From the NCBI GenBank assembly GCA_964019335.1, contig OZ025706.1, positions 1 through 64,000 of the forward strand: a DNA stretch of 64,000 nt, in the 5' to 3' direction. The notes under the pieces were generated by a model. It had not been told where the DNA came from. It did no database searches and saw nothing but the letters and a program-made list of their open reading frames with translations. Origin of the DNA: Diplonema japonicum. Lineage: Eukaryota > Protista > Euglenozoa: Diplonemea. Both the position numbers and the translations under genes were made by a program. Positions 1-6,159 of the stretch are shown in pieces (the first letter of the stretch is position 1; each line of letters opens with the position of its first letter).

Positions 1-740
1 TTTGCGGGTTTGCGGGTTTGCGGGTTTGCGGGTTTGCGGGTTTGCGGGTTTGCGGGTTTGCGGGTTTGCGGGTTTGCGGGTTTGCGGGTTTGCGGGTTTG
101 CGGGTTTGCGGGTTTGCGGGTTTGCGGGTTTGCGGGTTTGCGGGTTTGCGGGTTTGCGGGTTTGCGGGTTTGCGGGTTTGCGGGTTTGCGGGTTTGCGGG
201 TTTGCGGGTTTGCGGGTTTGCGGGTTTGCGGGTTTGCGGGTTTGCGGGTTTGCGGGTTTGCGGGTTTGCGGGTTTGCGGGTTTGCGGGTTTGCGGGTTTG
301 CGGGTTTGCGGGTTTGCGGGTTTGCGGGTTTGCGGGTTTGCGGGTTTGCGGGTTTGCGGGTTTGCGGGTTTGCGGGTTTGCGGGTTTGCGGGTTTGCGGG
401 TTTGCGGGTTTGCGGGTTTGCGGGTTTGCGGGTTTGCGGGTTTGCGGGTTTGCGGGTTTGCGGGTTTGCGGGTTTGCGGGTTTGCGGGTTTGCGGGTTTG
501 CGGGTTTGCGGGTTTGCGGGTTTGCGGGTTTGCGGGTTTGCGGGTTTGCGGGTTTGCGGGTTTGCGGGTTTGCGGGTTTGCGGGTTTGCGGGTTTGCGGG
601 TTTGCGGGTTTGCGGGTTTGCGGGTTTGCGGGTTTGCGGGTTTGCGGGTTTGCGGGTTTGCGGGTTTGCGGGTTTGCGGGTTTGCGGGTTTGCGGGTTTG
701 CGGGTTTGCGGGTTTGCGGGTTTGCGGGTTTGCGGGTTTG
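1..740 (+). repeat. Perfect tandem array (TTTGCGGG)n, 92.5 units, telomere-like; runs off the left edge of the window
   Basis: Directly visible 8-nt period with no variant units seen. It has the T-run plus GGG composition typical of telomerase repeats, but the G-rich strand points inward. Confidence 0.95.
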
Positions 741-1372
741 AGCCCTGCGGCGGCGGCCACCTCCCTCACCCACCCCTCCGCCCCCCCTGGGATCCCCGTG
801 GTGGGGCGCACCTTGGCGTTCGTCCCCTCCCACCGGTACCCGTATTGGAGGGTCTCCCTCCCTGAGTTCCCAGACAGGGCCTCCCACTTTCCTGAAAGCA
901 GGGCTTTCGGGAAGGCAGGGGCCGGGCCCGTCCTCAACCCGGGAGGGTGTTCACCATACACCAGTACCCACCCCTTTTTTTCTCCCTCTTTTCTTCCCTC
1001 TTCAACAATAGCAGGGTCGGCTGCAGGGGTCGTGGTCGCGGCGGTCGTGGCTGCGGCAGGGGCGGCTGCGGCGGTCTCAGTTGCGGCGATCAGGGCGGCA
1101 GGGTCGGCTGCGGCGTTCAGGGCGGCTGGGGCGGCCGTGGCTGTAGCAGCGGCGGTCAAAACCGCGGTCTCTGCTAGTGATTTTTTTAGTTTATTTTGTT
1201 TTTCTAAAGGGGGGTGGGGGGATCTAGGGGGTGGGGGTGGGGATTCATACTGCCCAACCAGATAGTCTGGTTGGGTCGGCCCTGGCGTCGTGTGCAGCCT
1301 GGCGGCCTGTTGGGGTTCCTTCTCCCTGCGGTTTGTGCGGTCACCTCCTCTTGCGTTCCGTCTTGGATCCAT
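740..1372 (-). pseudogene. 3'-truncated ORF (211 codons, MDPRRNARGG...): Pro/Ala-rich N-terminus plus the first half of an AlkB-like 2OG-Fe(II) dioxygenase; runs without a stop into the repeat array
   Basis: Manual translation from the ATG at 1372 ends ...LLSGKWEALSGNSGRETLQYGYRWEGTNAKVRPTTGIPGGAEGWVREVAAAAGL|KPANPQ. This resembles the AlkB W...R..xQ/HYGYxY...IP pattern that precedes the NxY...HxD motif. It is absent from the ORF track because it has no stop codon. Confidence 0.55.
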
Positions 1373-1542
1373 TTTTTATTTTTTTTTTTTTTTAAAAGTG
1401 TGTGTTGGGGGAGGGGATCCTTTCGGTAAGCGGCGGGCAGGCCGACGGGCAAAACAACCCCCCCGGACGACGGCGACGACGGACGACGGACGCAGCGGCA
1501 AACCCAGGCAGAGGCGGCAGGCACCAGCAGAACACGAACGAC

Positions 1543-1581
1543 CAATAAAGTACAGAAACTGTAGCTTTAGAATCGTTGGAT
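1543..1581 (-). ncRNA. Euglenozoan (diplonemid-type) spliced-leader exon, probably a retro-copied SL rather than an SL RNA gene
   Basis: Minus strand reads ATCCAACGATTCTAAAGCTACAGTTTCTGTACTTTATTG (39 nt). The 3' part CAGTTTCTGTACTTTATTG is the conserved kinetoplastid/diplonemid SL core, and CCAACGATT...AAAGCTA matches the diplonemid SL as I recall it. It is followed by GTCGTTCG rather than a GTATG-type SL intron. Confidence 0.9.
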
Positions 1582-1686
1582 TTGACGCCGGGTGGTCAAA
1601 ACAAAAAATTGCGGGTTTGCGGGCCGGCCCCTTGTCCCAAAATATAAAAAACGCGATTTGACGCCGGGTGGTCAAAACAAAAAATT
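1579..1686. repeat. Two identical 32-bp direct repeats (1579-1610, 1655-1686), each a TTTGAC/GTCAAA hairpin, with about 2 units of the TTTGCGGG repeat at 1609-1623
   Basis: GATTTGACGCCGGGTGGTCAAAACAAAAAATT occurs twice, and TTGCGGGTTTGCGGG follows the first copy. Confidence 0.9.
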
Positions 1687-1697
1687 TGAATTAGTCC

Positions 1698-1807
1698 GGG
1701 TTCCGCGGCCTTCGGCCGCGGAACCCTTGTATTGAGGGTATATTATATTTTGCGCGGCCTTCGGCCGTGGTACCCACCCCCCTCTGCGGCCTTCGGCCGC
1801 GGAACCC
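1698..1807. repeat. Three GC-rich palindromes with a TTC/GAA triloop (1698-1726, ~1754-1768, 1786-1807)
   Basis: GGGTTCCGCGGCC-TTC-GGCCGCGGAACCC is a perfect 13-bp stem. The core GCGGCCTTCGGCCG recurs twice more. Confidence 0.9.
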
Positions 1808-2865
1808 GGTATTAGAAGAAACAAAATCTAGTGACTTCAGCAAAACCGACTAGAACATTAGACACATGTAAGTAATTAGAAACAGTTGAACTGTATCTTA
1901 GAGTGTTTGGATTTTTTTTTTTTTGGATTTTTTTTTTGGACCAACATACAATCCACGTCTCTAATTTTAAACAAGAGGCCTTGTTCCTGTAGTTTATCTG
2001 TAGTTTAGTAAAGTTCAGTGTATTTCGAGGTGCTGACTTTACTAAGCAGTAACTCTTAAGCGAACCACGCTGCTCTGAAAGTGATGTAAGTTATTGGTTC
2101 CTTGACCCATAGCTCGACAGTTGCTATGCTATGCTGTCTATTTCACGTTGGAACACTTCCTTCGGTGTAATGCAGACATCTGAAATTTGGTATTTCCCTG
2201 TATGAGGTACAAATAGAAGGCAGGTTCTTTTTTAAATTTTTTCATAGAATTAGTTTTTGGTCTATGGACCATAAACAAAGAAAGAAAAAATCTAAAATGA
2301 TAAGATGAGACACGTGACGTGAAAAACAAATGTTTGTAATGCAAGATGGTAACTGGTCACCAACCCAAAAACAGAACATCTCATGAATAAAATAAAGTAA
2401 TGAATATTTTCCTGAACCACAGATGCAAAATATAAAGATTGCAGTAAAACTGAAAAATTGATTTTTTTGAACGCGAAAGTGGCACAAGTCAAACGGCACA
2501 GACTTCACTGAAATGACTCGCTTAAGGGAGATTACACACCTAGATCCAGAAAAGGTCTTGTTGCCCCTCAAAAAGAAGGAGGAAGAAAAGAGTGGACTGG
2601 CGCCGGCAACACCGCACTCTTTTTGTTCGCACGAACAAAATTTTTAAAAGCTGCGGAAGCTACAAAAATCATTTTTGAAAGATAAATATTTGCAACAAAA
2701 GAAATACGGTACAAAAAAAGAGATAGAAAAGAGGGAAACAGGAGATGGCATATTCAAAAGTCCAATGAAAAATTCTAAATGATAATGAGGAGGGGAAATG
2801 GAGAGAAGATGTAAATATGAAGAAATCTAAAAACCTTTTTTCTCAGATCAGGAAACGTGACAAAC

Positions 2866-5800
2866 CTACTCAACGCGGTTCCAATCTGTGTCCATGGGAG
2901 GCAGGGTCTCGTACTCGCCTTCTGTCGGTGCAACGTGCACCCAACTCGTTGCGTGGTTCTTCAGCTTAATAGTTTGGCTCGCGTACTTTATTTTGATTTG
3001 TTCAAAGCACGCGTCGGTCAGTGAGCTGCCATTCGATTGCAGAATAGCATTGAACCTGTGGAATATCCCAATCAACTTCTCCCAATGAGGGTCGGACATC
3101 AGTGTTCCGATGTTGCCCACCACGAACAACGCAGCTATGGGGCGGCTGATCGCCACATTAAGCCTCTGCGGTTGCTGAAGGAATCCAATGCTCTGCCTGT
3201 GGTCGTTCGGCACTTCATCTGCTTCCTGTGAACGCACGCAGGAAAGGATGATAACGTTTGCCTCACGTCCCTGGAAGGTTTCCACGGAGCACACAGAAAC
3301 AGGCAACTGATTCCTTTTGTAGTTCCACGGCTTTATGAATGGATAGTACCCGGCCTCAAATTTGTAGTGTATCTTATCACGAATCACCTGGCACTGCTTC
3401 AGGTACGGCGTAAGCACCACAATGTCTTCAAACTTGAGCTTCCCGGTGTTCAACAACTCTTCTACTAAGTCAACCACTTTGTAAGCTTCCGCCTCGTTCT
3501 TCCACGATGGTGAGTCTTCCTCACGTGTTTCCTTCCCTGCCACATGGTAAAAGGCAAGTGGGTGAAACTTCTCCGACGGGACAGCAAGGCTATACGGAAA
3601 GAGGGAAGTGCCCTTCAAAAGTTCTCTTTTCGCAAGCGGCGCACGTGCTCGGAGGGTGTTGTTGTAGGTCAGCTCGTTGTACACAGCCATGATGCTCGGG
3701 TGGGCTCGGTAACTGTCTAGAAGCTGCACTGAATGTTGTGGACACGTCTTCATTAGACGCTCCAGAACTGACACTCCAAATCCAAGAACTTGGCAGGGCA
3801 TAGAGCGGAGTACTGGTCCAAGCTGCTTGTGGTCACCAGCAAAGGCGATGACTGTTCCACGCTCCCCGAGCTCAAAGTGAGGACCATTCATAAACTGCAA
3901 TGGCACAAGAAGCTCCGTCTCTGTTGCCTGACCTGCCTCGTCAACCGCAATATGTGTGAAATTCCCCTTCTTAACACCCATTGTGTACAAGGTCCCTGTC
4001 ACCATCAGTGTGCACACGATTAACTCAGCCCCTTCCAGATCCGCTACAGTCAGGCCCGATGCTCGTTTTGCAAACCTTCGAACATCTTTACTGCAACTTT
4101 CGATATTGTAGCTCTCTGCCAGCAGGCGTATATGCTTGGTACCACATGATGCACCTCCACGCTCGACAAGACGTTCAAACAGTAAGTTCGCAGCTTCGTT
4201 GCTTGGTGTGGCCACTAGAATGCGTGGGCGTTCCCAAGATTGCCAACCAAGGAAACCGAACTTTAGTATGCCCTTCACCAGGATTAGATTGATTGCATCA
4301 ACTAGCGTTGTCGTCTTGCCCGTACCAGGTGGGCCATGCAGCAGCACAAGATGGTGTTTGCCACATGGGACGGGTTGCAGGATCCGATTGACGCACTCTT
4401 TCTGCTCTAAGTTCATGTTCGTTTTGGAAGATGCATTGTTGTAGTACTGCAAACTGTCCCATTCGCGGTCGTGACAATCAGCAAAATGACTTTCAATGTA
4501 TCCGTCTGTCAATAGTGGTGCCTCGTCAACTGCGAGGAATTGCTTCCTCCAGTTTGTCTCCGGCATGCTGAAAATTACAAGAAACGTTGTCCTCTCAGAA
4601 GACAGGAAGCCGATGCCAAACTTCACAAGCACATGGTCAAGGTTCACGAAGTGCACGAAACCTAAGTGCCATCTCATGCTCCCGTTGTCTCGCACACGCA
4701 CCTTGTCACCACGCAACACACTGGGACGCTTCTCGGCAAGCCCCTTGCAGTCGATGCGGTACAGCCCATGTTGCCCATCCCGACGAATAGCAGCATTATG
4801 CAAATCATATGCCCGAACATCACTGATGTTCTGCGTGGTTTCAACAGCCAGCAAGTTCTTAAAGAACTGTCTTGCAGTCTGCGGCTTCCCAAGAGCACTC
4901 TCACGTGTCATGTTCCCCTGTCCGATTCCCAGCTTATCAGCAGTGTACAGATCTCTCAGGAATCTTGCACCGTACCATCCTTTCTTTTTCCTCGATTCTT
5001 CTGACGATGCAGCAACACCTTCAAGGAGGAAACGCGGGATGACCATCCGCAACGTAGGGAGGTCCATCTCGTACTCGATCTTTGCCATTACTGGGGGATC
5101 GCCTCTTTGTTCTTGCGTGAATTTGATGTCCATCTGCTGCTGTCTAGTAACCTGTCCTGTTGCTTCGAGGAGAGTGTGCTTCAGATCGCAGAAGGCATTA
5201 CTACATTTGCCTGATAGTGCGAATTTACGGCACCTCATCTCTTCTCTTGTGTGGGCAAACCAGCAGTCTCCCCACATATACTTTCTACACGTATCACCCC
5301 GTTTGCACATTGTAGTCTTCCTCATTAATGAGGCATCAGGTCTGTCTTCGACTTTGACGTTCCAGCACACACCGCAGAACGCCTTTTTTTTTCCCTTCCG
5401 TGCCTCCGCAACCATCCTTTTGCAGCCTTGACAACGCACACGTCTTCCGCTTATACTCGATATGACACCCAGGGGGAGAAGCGAGTTGTTGTAAAAGTTG
5501 GAATTGAGGACGCTTTTGTCAGATACGTCGACCTTCAGGTACGCGTACTTGATGGAGGCGGAACGAAGCCCCCCGAGAGCTGAAGATGCCATGTCGCGAT
5601 TCTTGATAATACTATAATACAAATCCACAAGCAGTGACACATCCTCGGCTGCGTATTCTAAAAGCTTCGCGTCTAGCGGGCGCTCCATCCAGAAGGCGCT
5701 GCCTCCCTCTCGCATCCTCTTCGATACCTCATCTAGGGTGGAGGTGTCGCCCACGGAAAACTCCTTCAGGCACCATTTCAAAGACCTGATGCGTGTACAG

Positions 5801-6159
5801 TAGGGGTTCTGCTTCTCTTTCCTTGACAGTACTTCGAGAATTTGGATATCGAATATGTTCTTGCACACCCTCACACCCCACAAATGCGCCATCGCATCAC
5901 AATCCGACCTGCAGTCGTACATCAGTTTCAAAATCTTTCCGGAAAAGAGAGCTTGCATGAACTGGATGAGAACACCAAGCGAAACCTTCAGCACATCGAT
6001 GACATACAATCCTCGTTCACACGACAACTGAACAAGCGATATCTTCCCGTTGCGTCCTAGGTCTTGCCCTTCCAAGTCAACCGAAACACACCCAGTGCCA
6101 AGCACTACACGCATAGCATCATGCAGCTCTGCCGTTGTCTGGCAGTACTTCATCCTCAT
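2866..6159 (-). CDS. DEDDy 3'-5' exonuclease + zinc fingers + MOV10/SDE3/Armitage-type (UPF1-like SF1) RNA helicase fusion, 1097 aa
   Basis: Exonuclease motifs VSVDLEG, MYDCRSD and LEYAAEDV. CxxC...CxxC and two CCCH-like fingers. MOV10/SDE3-type GLAEKRPSVLRGD. Helicase motifs HGPPGTGKT, ATPSNEAA, VDEAGQ, AGDHKQLGP, YRAHP, SVETFQGRE and RLNVAISR. Confidence 0.88.
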   Translation of the reverse strand: MRMKYCQTTAELHDAMRVVLGTGCVSVDLEGQDLGRNGKISLVQLSCERGLYVIDVLKVSLGVLIQFMQALFSGKILKLMYDCRSDCDAMAHLWGVRVCKNIFDIQILEVLSRKEKQNPYCTRIRSLKWCLKEFSVGDTSTLDEVSKRMREGGSAFWMERPLDAKLLEYAAEDVSLLVDLYYSIIKNRDMASSALGGLRSASIKYAYLKVDVSDKSVLNSNFYNNSLLPLGVISSISGRRVRCQGCKRMVAEARKGKKKAFCGVCWNVKVEDRPDASLMRKTTMCKRGDTCRKYMWGDCWFAHTREEMRCRKFALSGKCSNAFCDLKHTLLEATGQVTRQQQMDIKFTQEQRGDPPVMAKIEYEMDLPTLRMVIPRFLLEGVAASSEESRKKKGWYGARFLRDLYTADKLGIGQGNMTRESALGKPQTARQFFKNLLAVETTQNISDVRAYDLHNAAIRRDGQHGLYRIDCKGLAEKRPSVLRGDKVRVRDNGSMRWHLGFVHFVNLDHVLVKFGIGFLSSERTTFLVIFSMPETNWRKQFLAVDEAPLLTDGYIESHFADCHDREWDSLQYYNNASSKTNMNLEQKECVNRILQPVPCGKHHLVLLHGPPGTGKTTTLVDAINLILVKGILKFGFLGWQSWERPRILVATPSNEAANLLFERLVERGGASCGTKHIRLLAESYNIESCSKDVRRFAKRASGLTVADLEGAELIVCTLMVTGTLYTMGVKKGNFTHIAVDEAGQATETELLVPLQFMNGPHFELGERGTVIAFAGDHKQLGPVLRSMPCQVLGFGVSVLERLMKTCPQHSVQLLDSYRAHPSIMAVYNELTYNNTLRARAPLAKRELLKGTSLFPYSLAVPSEKFHPLAFYHVAGKETREEDSPSWKNEAEAYKVVDLVEELLNTGKLKFEDIVVLTPYLKQCQVIRDKIHYKFEAGYYPFIKPWNYKRNQLPVSVCSVETFQGREANVIILSCVRSQEADEVPNDHRQSIGFLQQPQRLNVAISRPIAALFVVGNIGTLMSDPHWEKLIGIFHRFNAILQSNGSSLTDACFEQIKIKYASQTIKLKNHATSWVHVAPTEGEYETLPPMDTDWNRVE

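Follow-up and report, generated by a model that had tools for sequence, protein, structure and literature searches.

The left end of the analyzed window (64,000 nt, from base 1 of contig C59) very probably holds a terminal, 3′-truncated copy from a family of autonomous non-LTR (LINE-type) retrotransposons found at the chromosome ends of this diplonemid. The copy lies at 741–1579 on the minus strand and is the first ~840 bases of the element. Full copies measure ~9.3 kb (about 9–10 kb) and begin with the spliced leader (SL), followed by GT, a leader, and then one polyprotein of ~2,800 aa. The domains of the polyprotein are ordered AlkB-like 2OG/Fe(II) dioxygenase, OTU protease, R2-like reverse transcriptase (RT) and CCHC/restriction-like endonuclease.

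The window copy and its family

At least 62 copies were counted in the genome, nearly all within ~20 kb of contig ends and with the sense strand pointing outward. A similarity search with the element returned at least 54 matches, also nearly all close to contig ends, and the telomere association proposed in an earlier sequence-only reading of this DNA was borne out. The 62 exact leaders were divided between the minus strand (28, mostly near left ends) and the plus strand (34, mostly near right ends). Chromosome ends were sampled as 8 ends and 11 short loci. At every end seen, the SL (5′) end was proximal and the sense strand ran outward. Element 3′ ends comprised 26-nt repeats and A7, then CCCGCAAA repeats, and where intact always read GCGGG-T7-AAAAAGGGGG, in one fixed orientation. 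Flanks past the SL end differed in each copy, which places the element boundary exactly at the SL, and copies resided at telomere repeats, satellites or other elements. LTRs and terminal repeats were absent; A7 3′ ends, T44–T50 tracts, truncated copies and internally deleted derivatives (in L014, L016, L017 and L019) were present. Some contigs break within element arrays (L016, L018, L019).

The contig opens with a 100% perfect terminal repeat array, (TTTGCGGG)92.5, at 1–740 (plus strand), which meets the element at 740/741 (...GGGTTTG/AGCCC...; a slash marks the join here and below). The 3′-truncated start of the polyprotein ORF occupies 741–1372 (minus strand; 211 codons by translation, including the junction codon), with its ATG at 1372–1370, and the frame is open to 740 and then runs on into the array. 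It is preceded by a 170-nt leader, or 5′ UTR (1373–1542, minus strand), and by the DNA-encoded SL (1543–1579, minus strand), of which nt 3–39 of 39 are present (37/39 bases, CCAACG...TTTATTG, read from 1579 to 1543) and which forms the 5′ boundary of the element. The SL, leader and ORF of the sequence-only reading were confirmed at these positions. So was the break of the ORF in mid-domain at GGGCT/CAAACCCG, which is genuine, as the flanks of 11 other copies were compared and all run on past it as ...GLEVVPNQ.... Identity of the window copy was 98% with the copy in C75 and 84% with that in C9.

On its other side, the SL end meets a 77-bp subtelomeric satellite (1579–1686, plus strand) with a 1-nt overlap. 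The window has 1.4 units of this satellite, vs. 90 units at the C112 end, and the two repeat units past the SL that had been taken as newly added belong to it: the telomere-like 15-mer TTGCGGGTTTGCGGG at 1609–1623 lies inside a satellite unit, and such a 15-mer is found in each unit. A GC-palindrome block of 135 nt (1687–1821, plus strand), common only to the C112 subtelomere, comes next, with chromosome-specific DNA thereafter.

Chimeric joining of telomere, element and chromosome reads during assembly is extremely improbable as the source of this arrangement. The element is about as long as the mean HiFi read, its copies are 98–99% alike, and the contigs breaking inside element arrays are compatible with such joining. 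However, the same grammar was seen at many ends, the junction 22-mer at 740/741 occurs only once in the genome and is not a repeated mis-join, and sequencing run X4, from an independent study, likewise fuses the SL end to the 77-bp satellite with an identical unique flank. The D. japonicum genome note gives a QV of 59.4 (PMC13598402). Runs X4 and X6 were examined as fragmented Logan contigs. For the SL-containing RNA-seq reads that the sequence-only reading wished to see, X6 is a candidate: its contigs cover 738–1568, including the SL/leader junction, but the run only resembles RNA-seq and has no record as RNA.

Pfam gave no AlkB match, and nothing relevant, for the 211-aa window fragment alone. 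The fragment has an Ala/Thr/Pro-rich, low-complexity N-terminus, followed by the start of the AlkB-like fold (~37 of 125 aligned AlkB residues). It ends 24 aa short of the HxD motif, and none of the three HxD...H...RxxxxxR motifs is in it. The window ORF was nevertheless assigned to AlkB because full-length copies match PF13532 (E 3.6e-13 and 2.2e-14) and, in the PDB, ALKBH8 (AlkB part, E 4e-9), which upheld the truncated AlkB ORF that had been claimed; nor is the ORF single-copy, an outcome that had been named as a possible refutation. The full-length copy with an RT ORF and the AlkB motifs that had been sought was found elsewhere in the genome. Full copies carry AHKDD, HHIPSG and RVSITLR, i.e., the HxD...H triad and RxxxxxR, and it is these copies only that are predicted, from their sequence, to belong to the AlkB family of 2OG/Fe(II) dioxygenases. 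An ESM Atlas search with the AlkB part returned only generic stand-alone 2OG oxygenases from algae and giant viruses.

One full-length ORF of 2,866 aa matched RVT_1 (3e-16), 2OG-FeII_Oxy_2 (3.6e-13) and OTU (5.7e-12) in Pfam. The window copy itself has no RT domain; in the PDB, the best matches of the family RT were R2 proteins (1e-7). C-terminal to the RT, C-x4-C-x11-H-x3-C at aa 1989 is followed by RHD, RPAD and MDVVIV. In this CCHC and E...PAD...D...K block, the residues C, C, H, C, E, P, A, D, D and K were invariant across 7 relatives, and the block is a predicted restriction-like endonuclease of PD-(D/E)XK type. The best named relative was the ‘SLACS 132 kDa protein’ of D. papillatum (39% identity, E 6.5e-178), and likeness to the CRE clade is a matter of the database annotation of such best matches. 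With a LINE RT, the nuclease block and the copying of polyadenylated RNA all found, the element is classed as a non-LTR retrotransposon with a restriction-like endonuclease (R2/CRE supergroup). The endonuclease-deficient Penelope-like element first proposed is ruled out by the R2/SLACS-like RT and the conserved nuclease block, and the AlkB domains mentioned for Penelope-like elements found no confirmation in the literature searched.

The spliced leader at the element 5′ end

True SL RNA genes (L043) combine a 39-nt SL beginning AACCAACG with a GTACCCAATC... intron, a T-run and a conserved block upstream; they are uninterrupted, and their intron is unlike the element leader. A 5S/SL RNA cluster lies at one chromosome end (C15), and 217 SL cores were counted genome-wide. 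An Rfam scan of window positions 1–6000 (E ≤ 1) gave one chance sRNA match (E 0.6) and no SL RNA family. In the window, the SL is followed by a donor-like GT (GTCGTT...). This GT and the C15 cluster are what would be expected of a normal SL RNA gene fragment, or an SL/5S array, beside the telomere, but the probability of such an origin is negligible: the leader is unrelated to the true intron (local score 8 vs. a shuffle mean of 8.7) and continues into the polyprotein ORF. The combination of upstream block, species intron and T-run was not found with the window SL. The sequence-only reading, which had offered this comparison as a possible refutation, came through it. Its statement that the SL lacks a GTATG-type intron stood as to the leader, which is unlike the true intron, but not as to the donor dinucleotide, as a GT does follow.

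The SL head is likely inherited with the element, probably as an internal start or an mRNA mimic. Ahead of the leader, the SL was exact in 60 of the 62 copies and carried a TG insertion in the other 2, those of C65 and C71. None of these long-form leaders has an AG before GTCGTT, and a genome-wide search among them found 0 of the predicted parents that would have an AG acceptor in place of the SL. As the AG is absent and the SL always there, the long-form SL is not regenerable by splicing at that site, and addition of the SL to this RNA by trans-splicing, as formerly supposed, is not required. Between subfamilies, the SL was identical at 37/37 positions and the adjoining leader at 66%. The base after the SL was G in 9/9 non-gene SL-headed classes sampled, with GT in 6/9, which indicates a retained donor site and not random acceptors. 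An internal promoter in the SL head may be inferred from the lack of shared upstream sequence.

Shorter forms of the leader were also seen. A GT...AG-bounded segment that begins at the SL donor position (1420–1542, minus strand) is precisely missing from several copies (SL/GATCC...; L045–L047; query matches 1–680 and 802–839), and a second AG-type leader variant is present in L052. In variants of the family, the SL joins the leader at 6 further positions or sequences, which brings the forms to 7 when the long one is counted; of these 6, two lie at AG acceptors (CGAAAG/GATCC and TTTAG/CAAAGG) and two at microhomologies with no AG. In L036, the SL is followed by TTTCTGTACTTTATTG and the leader, a stuttered SL that corresponds to a splice onto the CAG inside the encoded SL. 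Together, the AG-joined variants and the stuttered SL indicate that splicing of element RNA does occur, and some SLs may be newly acquired. One 123-nt intron behind all short leaders was rejected, as the deletion ends differ (query 650–712, window ~1390–1452) and two lack an AG.

These variants, and the perfect conservation of the SL between subfamilies, also suit a new SL in every copy, gained by trans-splicing of the element pre-mRNA and retro-copying of the mature RNA, as in dinoflagellate SL-relic retrogenes. Such repeated gain is unlikely. The 62 long-form copies all have the SL with no AG at the join, cis-splicing from the donor of the encoded SL accounts for the AG variants just as well, two other variants sit at microhomologies, and the G or GT after the SL is that of a retained donor. 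An inherited SL head is preferred.

Terminal polarity, cDNA junctions and the truncation at 740/741

In the window array (TTTGCGGG), it is the 5′ end of the G-rich strand that lies at the chromosome terminus. The same orientation was found at five further left contig ends (L013, L014, L015, L017 and L020), and two right contig ends (L007 and L010) carry CCCGCAAA on the top strand. This polarity is, to our knowledge, opposite to that of every telomerase-made telomere. No (TTAGGG)4 was found anywhere in the assembly, so a canonical TTAGGG array as the ‘real’ telomere past the 8-mer was rejected. A metagenome scan for (TTTGCGGG)4 gave 28 loci, none with similarity to the SL or the element; these are unrelated short tracts, of no use as an independent check of polarity. 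The literature searched for the 8-mer as a telomere, and for diplonemid telomeres, gave nothing relevant.

As the G-rich strand ends 5′ at the chromosome end, a natural G overhang cannot prime, and priming on a free G-strand 3′ end, as put forward in the sequence-only reading, fails at every end examined. The full proposal was that the mature trans-spliced RNA of an endonuclease-deficient Penelope/Athena-like element was copied, with the natural G-strand 3′ overhang annealed at an internal CAAACCC-like site as the primer, after which telomerase added repeats past the SL. It does account for the succession on the plus strand, from G repeats through antisense cDNA to the SL complement and often further G repeats, templates with C-rich telomeric tails do exist, and the microhomology at 740/741 is 1–3 nt (G or TTG, against the parental ...CCTCG or CCTTG before AGCCC). 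It is very unlikely all the same, as the RT is R2/SLACS-like with a conserved nuclease block behind it, the G strand runs 3′ into the chromosome body and leaves no free G-strand 3′ end at the physical end of the contig, the repeats past the SL are satellite, and the SL-less AG-acceptor parent is absent. In Athena/Coprina style, a G-strand 3′ overhang would be extended and the element 5′ end would lie distally; the proximal SL end and the outward sense strand contradict this.

Junctions between copies bore out the reading of the insert as an SL-headed retro-copy. On the plus strand of L018, the SL complement runs directly into T7 and the 3′ end of the next element; in L019, a 5′-truncated copy is joined to T44 and a 3′ end; and in L013, a 257-nt fragment is followed by T50, 2.5 telomere units, and T7 with a 3′ end. 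The SL is doubled in L017. The strand bearing TTTGCGGG is the cDNA strand, templates are polyadenylated and some read through into telomere repeats, and RT template switching is frequent in the family. The T44–T50 tracts are, judged from the DNA, records of real poly(A) tails.

A mechanism can be proposed in which the endonuclease would nick the G-rich strand of the telomere duplex, and the 3′-OH of the nick would prime on an A-run or a C-rich read-through tail in the manner of target-primed reverse transcription (cf. Bombyx TRAS/SART). The RT would then proceed to SL nt 1–3, and the cDNA end GGTT would anneal to a repeat or to whatever lies proximal; in the window copy, the SL end would have been joined to the 77-bp satellite. 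Speculatively, AlkB might demethylate bases of the template, among them perhaps those of the capped SL. Repeat phase at the truncated junctions varied (TTTG/, GGG/, TTT/, GCG/), which is unlike the fixed cut of R2-type enzymes and counts against this mechanism.

For the cut at 741, there is about an even chance that the RT began on telomeric sequence, or switched from it, to an internal CAA site. The junction may instead be secondary, a longer terminal copy having eroded or broken distally (3′) and been recapped, either by recombination or by a telomerase-like activity adding CCCGCAAA at the 3′ end, and this is a real contender, if somewhat short of even. The telomere-abutting truncated copies (n = 3; window, L013 and L020) are each the outermost unit, with arrays that are perfect or almost perfect vs. 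the variant-rich arrays by intact 3′ ends (L014 and L015), the variable phase and short microhomology resemble healed breaks, and with the element 3′ end outward, erosion yields exactly 3′ truncation. Against this, whatever abuts a terminal array is by definition terminal, abundant RT template switching could give an identical product, and the L013 257-nt fragment is easier to obtain by RT hopping than by erosion of >6 kb. G-overhang priming fits less well than a nicked telomere duplex or than erosion and then recapping.

A broader proposal is that chromosome ends are built or renewed by chains of SL-headed G-strand cDNAs, i.e., end maintenance by retrotransposons with a repeat of reversed polarity. 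AlkB would demethylate the SL cap region so that the RT reaches nt 1–3, and the SL head would be a portable start that makes the RNA mRNA-like. This is a long shot.

Comparison with known systems

Telomere-targeting LINEs occur in a few animals, Giardia and algae, and SL-linked LINEs (SLACS/CRE) in trypanosomatids. The present family unites both themes and sits at most ends of ~118 small chromosomes. It is a natural system for testing how a LINE, in a host that lacks gene-specific promoters, gets a defined 5′ end resembling that of an mRNA, and why RNA-based replicators capture AlkB repeatedly. If end-mapping confirms that the G-rich strand is 5′ at the terminus, a rule of all telomerase-made telomeres known to us would be broken. 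Neither telomeres nor these elements are described in the genome note of D. japonicum or the genome paper of D. papillatum, and no report of AlkB or OTU in LINEs, or of the AlkB, OTU, RT and nuclease layout, was found in the literature searched. A full SL as a heritable 5′ end, with AlkB and OTU on an RT-endonuclease core, would be new to transposon biology.

The CRE clade of trypanosomatids (SLACS, CZAR, CRE1/CRE2) is alike in its R2-like RT, CCHC knuckle and restriction-like endonuclease, in its euglenozoan host and in its close link to the SL, and the best named relatives of the element are annotated as SLACS; membership of the family in this clade is putative. CRE-clade elements insert inside SL RNA genes, at SL nt 11/12. 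No such site-specific insertion was seen in the uninterrupted SL RNA genes of L043. The present element lies in or next to telomere repeats, has SL nt 1–3 to 39 as its own 5′ end, and carries AlkB and OTU in a single giant ORF.

TRAS1 and SART1 of Bombyx mori are autonomous LINEs that occupy telomeric repeats, always in one orientation and with the repeats adjoining the A-tail, and their insertion is nick-primed, so that a free chromosome end is unnecessary. They are alike in telomeric-repeat location and fixed orientation. They differ in having an APE-type endonuclease, no SL head, AlkB or OTU, and a host telomere of the usual polarity.

Athena/Coprina Penelope-like elements and rotifer Terminons are also telomere-associated, their RNA 3′ ends carry the G-strand reverse complement and can anneal, and truncated copies are capped by telomere repeats. 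They differ in RT class, in having no endonuclease, in 5′ truncation and in outward extension of a G-strand 3′ overhang, whereas the present element has an endonuclease block, 3′ truncation and an outward sense strand.

In trypanosomatid L1Tc/ingi elements, the 5′ module Pr77 starts transcripts at the first base of the element and binds TBP and SNAP50, which are transcription factors of SL RNA genes (PMC1874656, PMC8190864). Pr77 is distinct from the SL and yields unspliced transcripts, and a promoter in the present SL head is putative.

AlkB domains are carried by plant RNA viruses. They are also found in orchid Ty3/Gypsy elements (PMC9289625). In both cases, as here, AlkB sits on an RNA-based replicator and presumably demethylates its own RNA, but the carriers are LTR elements or viruses and not LINEs.

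Dinoflagellate retrogenes have DNA-encoded SL relics at the 5′ end, with stuttered or partial leaders formed by re-splicing (e.g., PMC12014239, PMC5585692). Those are host genes copied in trans, whereas in the present family the retrotransposon itself bears the leader, which is apparently heritable.

Layout of the window copy and its satellite flank

The genome searched was the 62.5-Mb assembly of 132 contigs, in which the window forms the opening 64 kb of contig C59; a PacBio HiFi assembly of D. japonicum YPF1604 comprises 62.30 Mb and 118 chromosomes (PMC13598402). The contig begins with a terminal array of 92.5 copies of TTTGCGGG, all perfect (1-740). On the minus strand, spliced leader (SL) nt 3-39 of 39 (CCAACG...TTTATTG; 1579-1543) are followed by a 170-nt leader beginning with GT (1542-1373), then by an ATG and a 211-codon open ORF (1372 to 740), which stays open past 740 through the repeat array. 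The sequence-only reading had described this order of SL, leader, ORF and array correctly to the base. Its claim that the ORF was broken mid-domain was also borne out, as the ORF stops 24 residues ahead of the AlkB HxD motif. The label of truncated AlkB held in so far as the domain was assigned from full-length copies; the 211-codon window fragment alone gave no Pfam match. The 22-mer across the 740/741 junction occurs once in the whole genome.

Beyond the SL lie 1.4 units of a 77-bp satellite (1579-1686), each unit including TTGCGGGTTTGCGGG (about two telomere units). The SL end is joined to it with a 1-nt overlap, and the same join was found in contigs of X4, a sequencing run from an independent study. 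Contig C112 terminates at its right end within 90 tandem units of the same satellite (C112:201061-208000; L041, L042), and the 135-nt GC-palindrome block that follows it in the window (1687-1821) also follows it there. The two repeat units thought to have been newly added beyond the SL thus belong to this satellite and, because it is also present on C112, are old subtelomeric DNA and not additions made after reverse transcription. The palindrome-bearing block is common only to the C59 and C112 subtelomeres, with three perfect GC palindromes (GGAACCC/GGGTTCC arms around GCGGCCTTCGGCCGC; window 1695-1810, L041 100-200). Farther in, two short dispersed repeats of ~70-95 nt (2495-2590 and 2665-2730; 77-85% identity, dozens of copies genome-wide) had high depth in all four runs, and an intronless ORF of 1,097 aa (2866-6159, minus) has a 3' UTR that seems, from a contig of run X6, to extend to ~2243.

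The element family and its class

A whole-genome search with 741-1623 as query returned at least 54 matches at 84-99% identity, nearly all ~1-20 kb from a contig end. The SL-side boundary was identical in every copy (...CGTTGG, plus strand), and the flank beyond it differed from copy to copy. On the other side, 11/11 inspected copies carried common sequence past 741, so the window copy is shortened at its 3' end (RNA sense). The full element is ~9.3 kb (for example L015, 622-9952). The anticipated full-length copy with AlkB motifs and a reverse transcriptase (RT) was found, with a single 2,866-codon ORF containing Pfam 2OG-FeII_Oxy_2, OTU and RVT_1. Its AlkB-like part aligned with human ALKBH8 (E 4e-9) and, in full-length copies, retained HxD (AHKDD), the second H and the RxxxxxR motif, from which an AlkB function may be predicted.

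At the left end of C24 (7178-39097), SL cores lie ~10.66 kb apart (7178, 17837, 28496, 39079), which indicates at least four full-length elements in a head-to-tail array. In one copy (L020, C118:227-8903), most differences from related copies are C-to-T changes, such as GTTGTTTGTG for GTCGTTCGTG and CCAATG in the SL; the pattern is suggestive of an old copy decaying through deamination-type changes. Of the 31-mers from window 700-2700, approximately 30% were present in runs X11 and X12 (labelled as two other organisms), and near-identical element sequence may therefore exist outside the strain or species.

The element RT matched R2 proteins (PDB). Downstream of it lie a CCHC knuckle as well as a block whose E, P-A-D, D and K are invariant across 7 relatives, which we take to be the restriction-like endonuclease pattern of R2/CRE-type LINEs; on these motifs, a nuclease is predicted. 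The best named relatives came from D. papillatum and are annotated "Retrotransposable element SLACS 132 kDa protein" (39% identity, E 6.5e-178). Unnamed proteins from dinoflagellates, a sponge and moths ranked next. By its predicted domains, the element is a LINE encoding its own endonuclease. The proposed endonuclease-deficient Penelope-like element was abandoned, given the R2-like RT, the conserved predicted nuclease block and the SLACS-annotated relatives.

Identity and probable inheritance of the SL head

Two true SL RNA genes, 352 bp apart, were located ~1 kb from the right end of C15 (L043, C15:777088-780206), adjoining a 5S rRNA gene and a copy of the AlkB element. Each consists of a conserved upstream block, an exon (AACCAACG...TTATTG), an intron beginning GTACCCAATC and a T-run. 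No similarity was found between the element leader and this intron (local score 8 vs shuffle mean 8.7); an SL RNA gene was rejected as the identity of the window SL, and the sequence-only reading survived this comparison. Other SL RNA genes that have this upstream block are scattered through the genome (L027), and one without the block (L024) may be a retro-pseudogene.

The first 23 leader bases occur exactly 62 times genome-wide, preceded by the exact SL in 60/62 and by an SL carrying an inserted TG in 2/62. The search for an SL-less parent found AG ahead of the exact leader start in 0/62 occurrences, and as the junction of SL and GTCGTT lacks an AG, splicing could not regenerate the long form. 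Between two subfamilies the SL was identical at 37/37 positions and the adjoining 123 bases at 66%, which implies that the SL is under constraint. This evidence makes it quite probable, in our judgement, that the SL head is by now inherited as part of the element. Some copies speak for re-acquisition of the SL: six further leader positions or sequences carry an SL join (two at AG acceptors, two at microhomologies), and one copy reads SL, TTTCTGTACTTTATTG and leader, the product of splicing onto a CAG inside the encoded SL. Splicing at or onto the encoded head thus appears still to occur occasionally in an otherwise inherited SL.

The SL core has 217 genome occurrences, and interior sites head at least nine other retro-element classes (L021-L040, 20 interior SL sites sampled on C1-C34). 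The base after the SL was G in 9/9 of the sampled classes and GT followed in 6/9, so SL heads retain a donor-like site. Upstream flanks of interior SL-headed elements are often T-rich, and two interior classes carry CAATAAAG, complementary to the 3' part of the SL, ~13 nt past the donor.

Depth in X6 was zero over intergenic 1617-2240 and huge on the SL, with a 3,977-nt contig over the 3' part of the neighbouring gene; this run, though not catalogued as RNA, therefore behaves like RNA-seq. Since its contigs over 738-1203, 1234-1288 and 1408-1568 include the SL-leader junction, the family is probably transcribed with the leader retained; these contigs speak for the family and not for any particular copy. 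By analogy with Pr77 of L1Tc (PMC1874656, PMC8190864), the SL head probably serves as a putative promoter, in the sense of a start signal, or as an mRNA mimic.

Probable copying into telomeres of apparently reversed polarity, and known systems

At six left contig ends (the window, L013, L014, L015, L017, L020) the top strand opens with TTTGCGGG, and at two right ends (L007, L010) it closes with CCCGCAAA; no TTAGGG arrays were found anywhere in the assembly. Because of the array orientation at these eight ends, the G-rich strand has its 5' end at the terminus, and CCCGCAAA runs 5' to 3' outward. To our knowledge, this polarity is the reverse of every known telomerase-made telomere. The element sense strand is directed outward into the C-rich strand. 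By coordinates against known contig sizes, ~54 of the 62 leaders (28 minus strand, 34 plus strand) lie within ~20 kb of an end and comply with this orientation.

Copying was read on the strand carrying TTTGCGGG. In L018 the SL complement passes directly into T7 and the following element's antisense 3' end; L019 has a 5'-truncated copy, then T44 and a 3' end; L017 has two SLs separated by six leader bases. L013 has a 257-nt fragment, then T50, 2.5 telomere units, T7 and a 3' end, and its template was therefore element RNA that had read through into CCCGCAAA repeats and been polyadenylated there. Internal-deletion derivatives retain both ends (L014, L016, L017, L019). Such junctions bear the signature of an RT that is processive, extends to the RNA 5' end and often switches templates, and the G-rich strand is the cDNA strand. 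One A precedes CCAACG in most copies (20/27, counted from flanks) and two As in fewer, so cDNAs usually end at SL nt 2. A stop near this position is expected for a capped, modified RNA 5' end; transcription from heterogeneous start sites would give the same picture.

Priming by a free G-strand 3' end, as had been proposed, needs the chromosome body behind that end, but here the body lies ahead. Ordinary target-primed reverse transcription would be the simplest fit: the element nuclease would nick the G strand within the duplex array, the repeat TTT would pair with the A-run or C-rich read-through tail, and the cDNA end GGTT (complement of SL AACC) would re-match the repeat after copying. Junctions like CGTTGG-TT-TGCGGG are common. 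A fixed cut is unsupported, as the repeat phase varies at truncated junctions.

Two routes to the 740/741 junction were weighed. RT may have started from telomeric sequence, either primer or RNA tail, and carried on at a CAA within the RNA, to which we give an even chance; the frequent template switching in the family and the short fragment in L013 are in keeping with this route. Alternatively, a longer terminal copy was eroded from its outward 3' end and then recapped, a plausible course that we lean mildly against. All three such truncated copies are outermost units, and they have perfect arrays, whereas arrays beside intact 3' ends are variant-rich; both points fit erosion and recapping.

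The literature search found no paper on this element family, on telomeres of diplonemids or on the 8-mer repeat, and no report of AlkB in LINEs; among retroelements, AlkB is reported for orchid Ty3/Gypsy elements (PMC9289625). Of all these findings, the reversed telomere polarity holds the most promise. By annotation of the top relatives, SLACS/CRE-type elements are nearest to the RT-nuclease core, but the defining habit of CRE elements, residence inside SL RNA genes, is not shared by the element here. Its DNA-encoded leader recalls the SL-relic retrogenes of dinoflagellates, and in its working it is likened to TRAS/SART of Bombyx, as a telomere-repeat-specific LINE.
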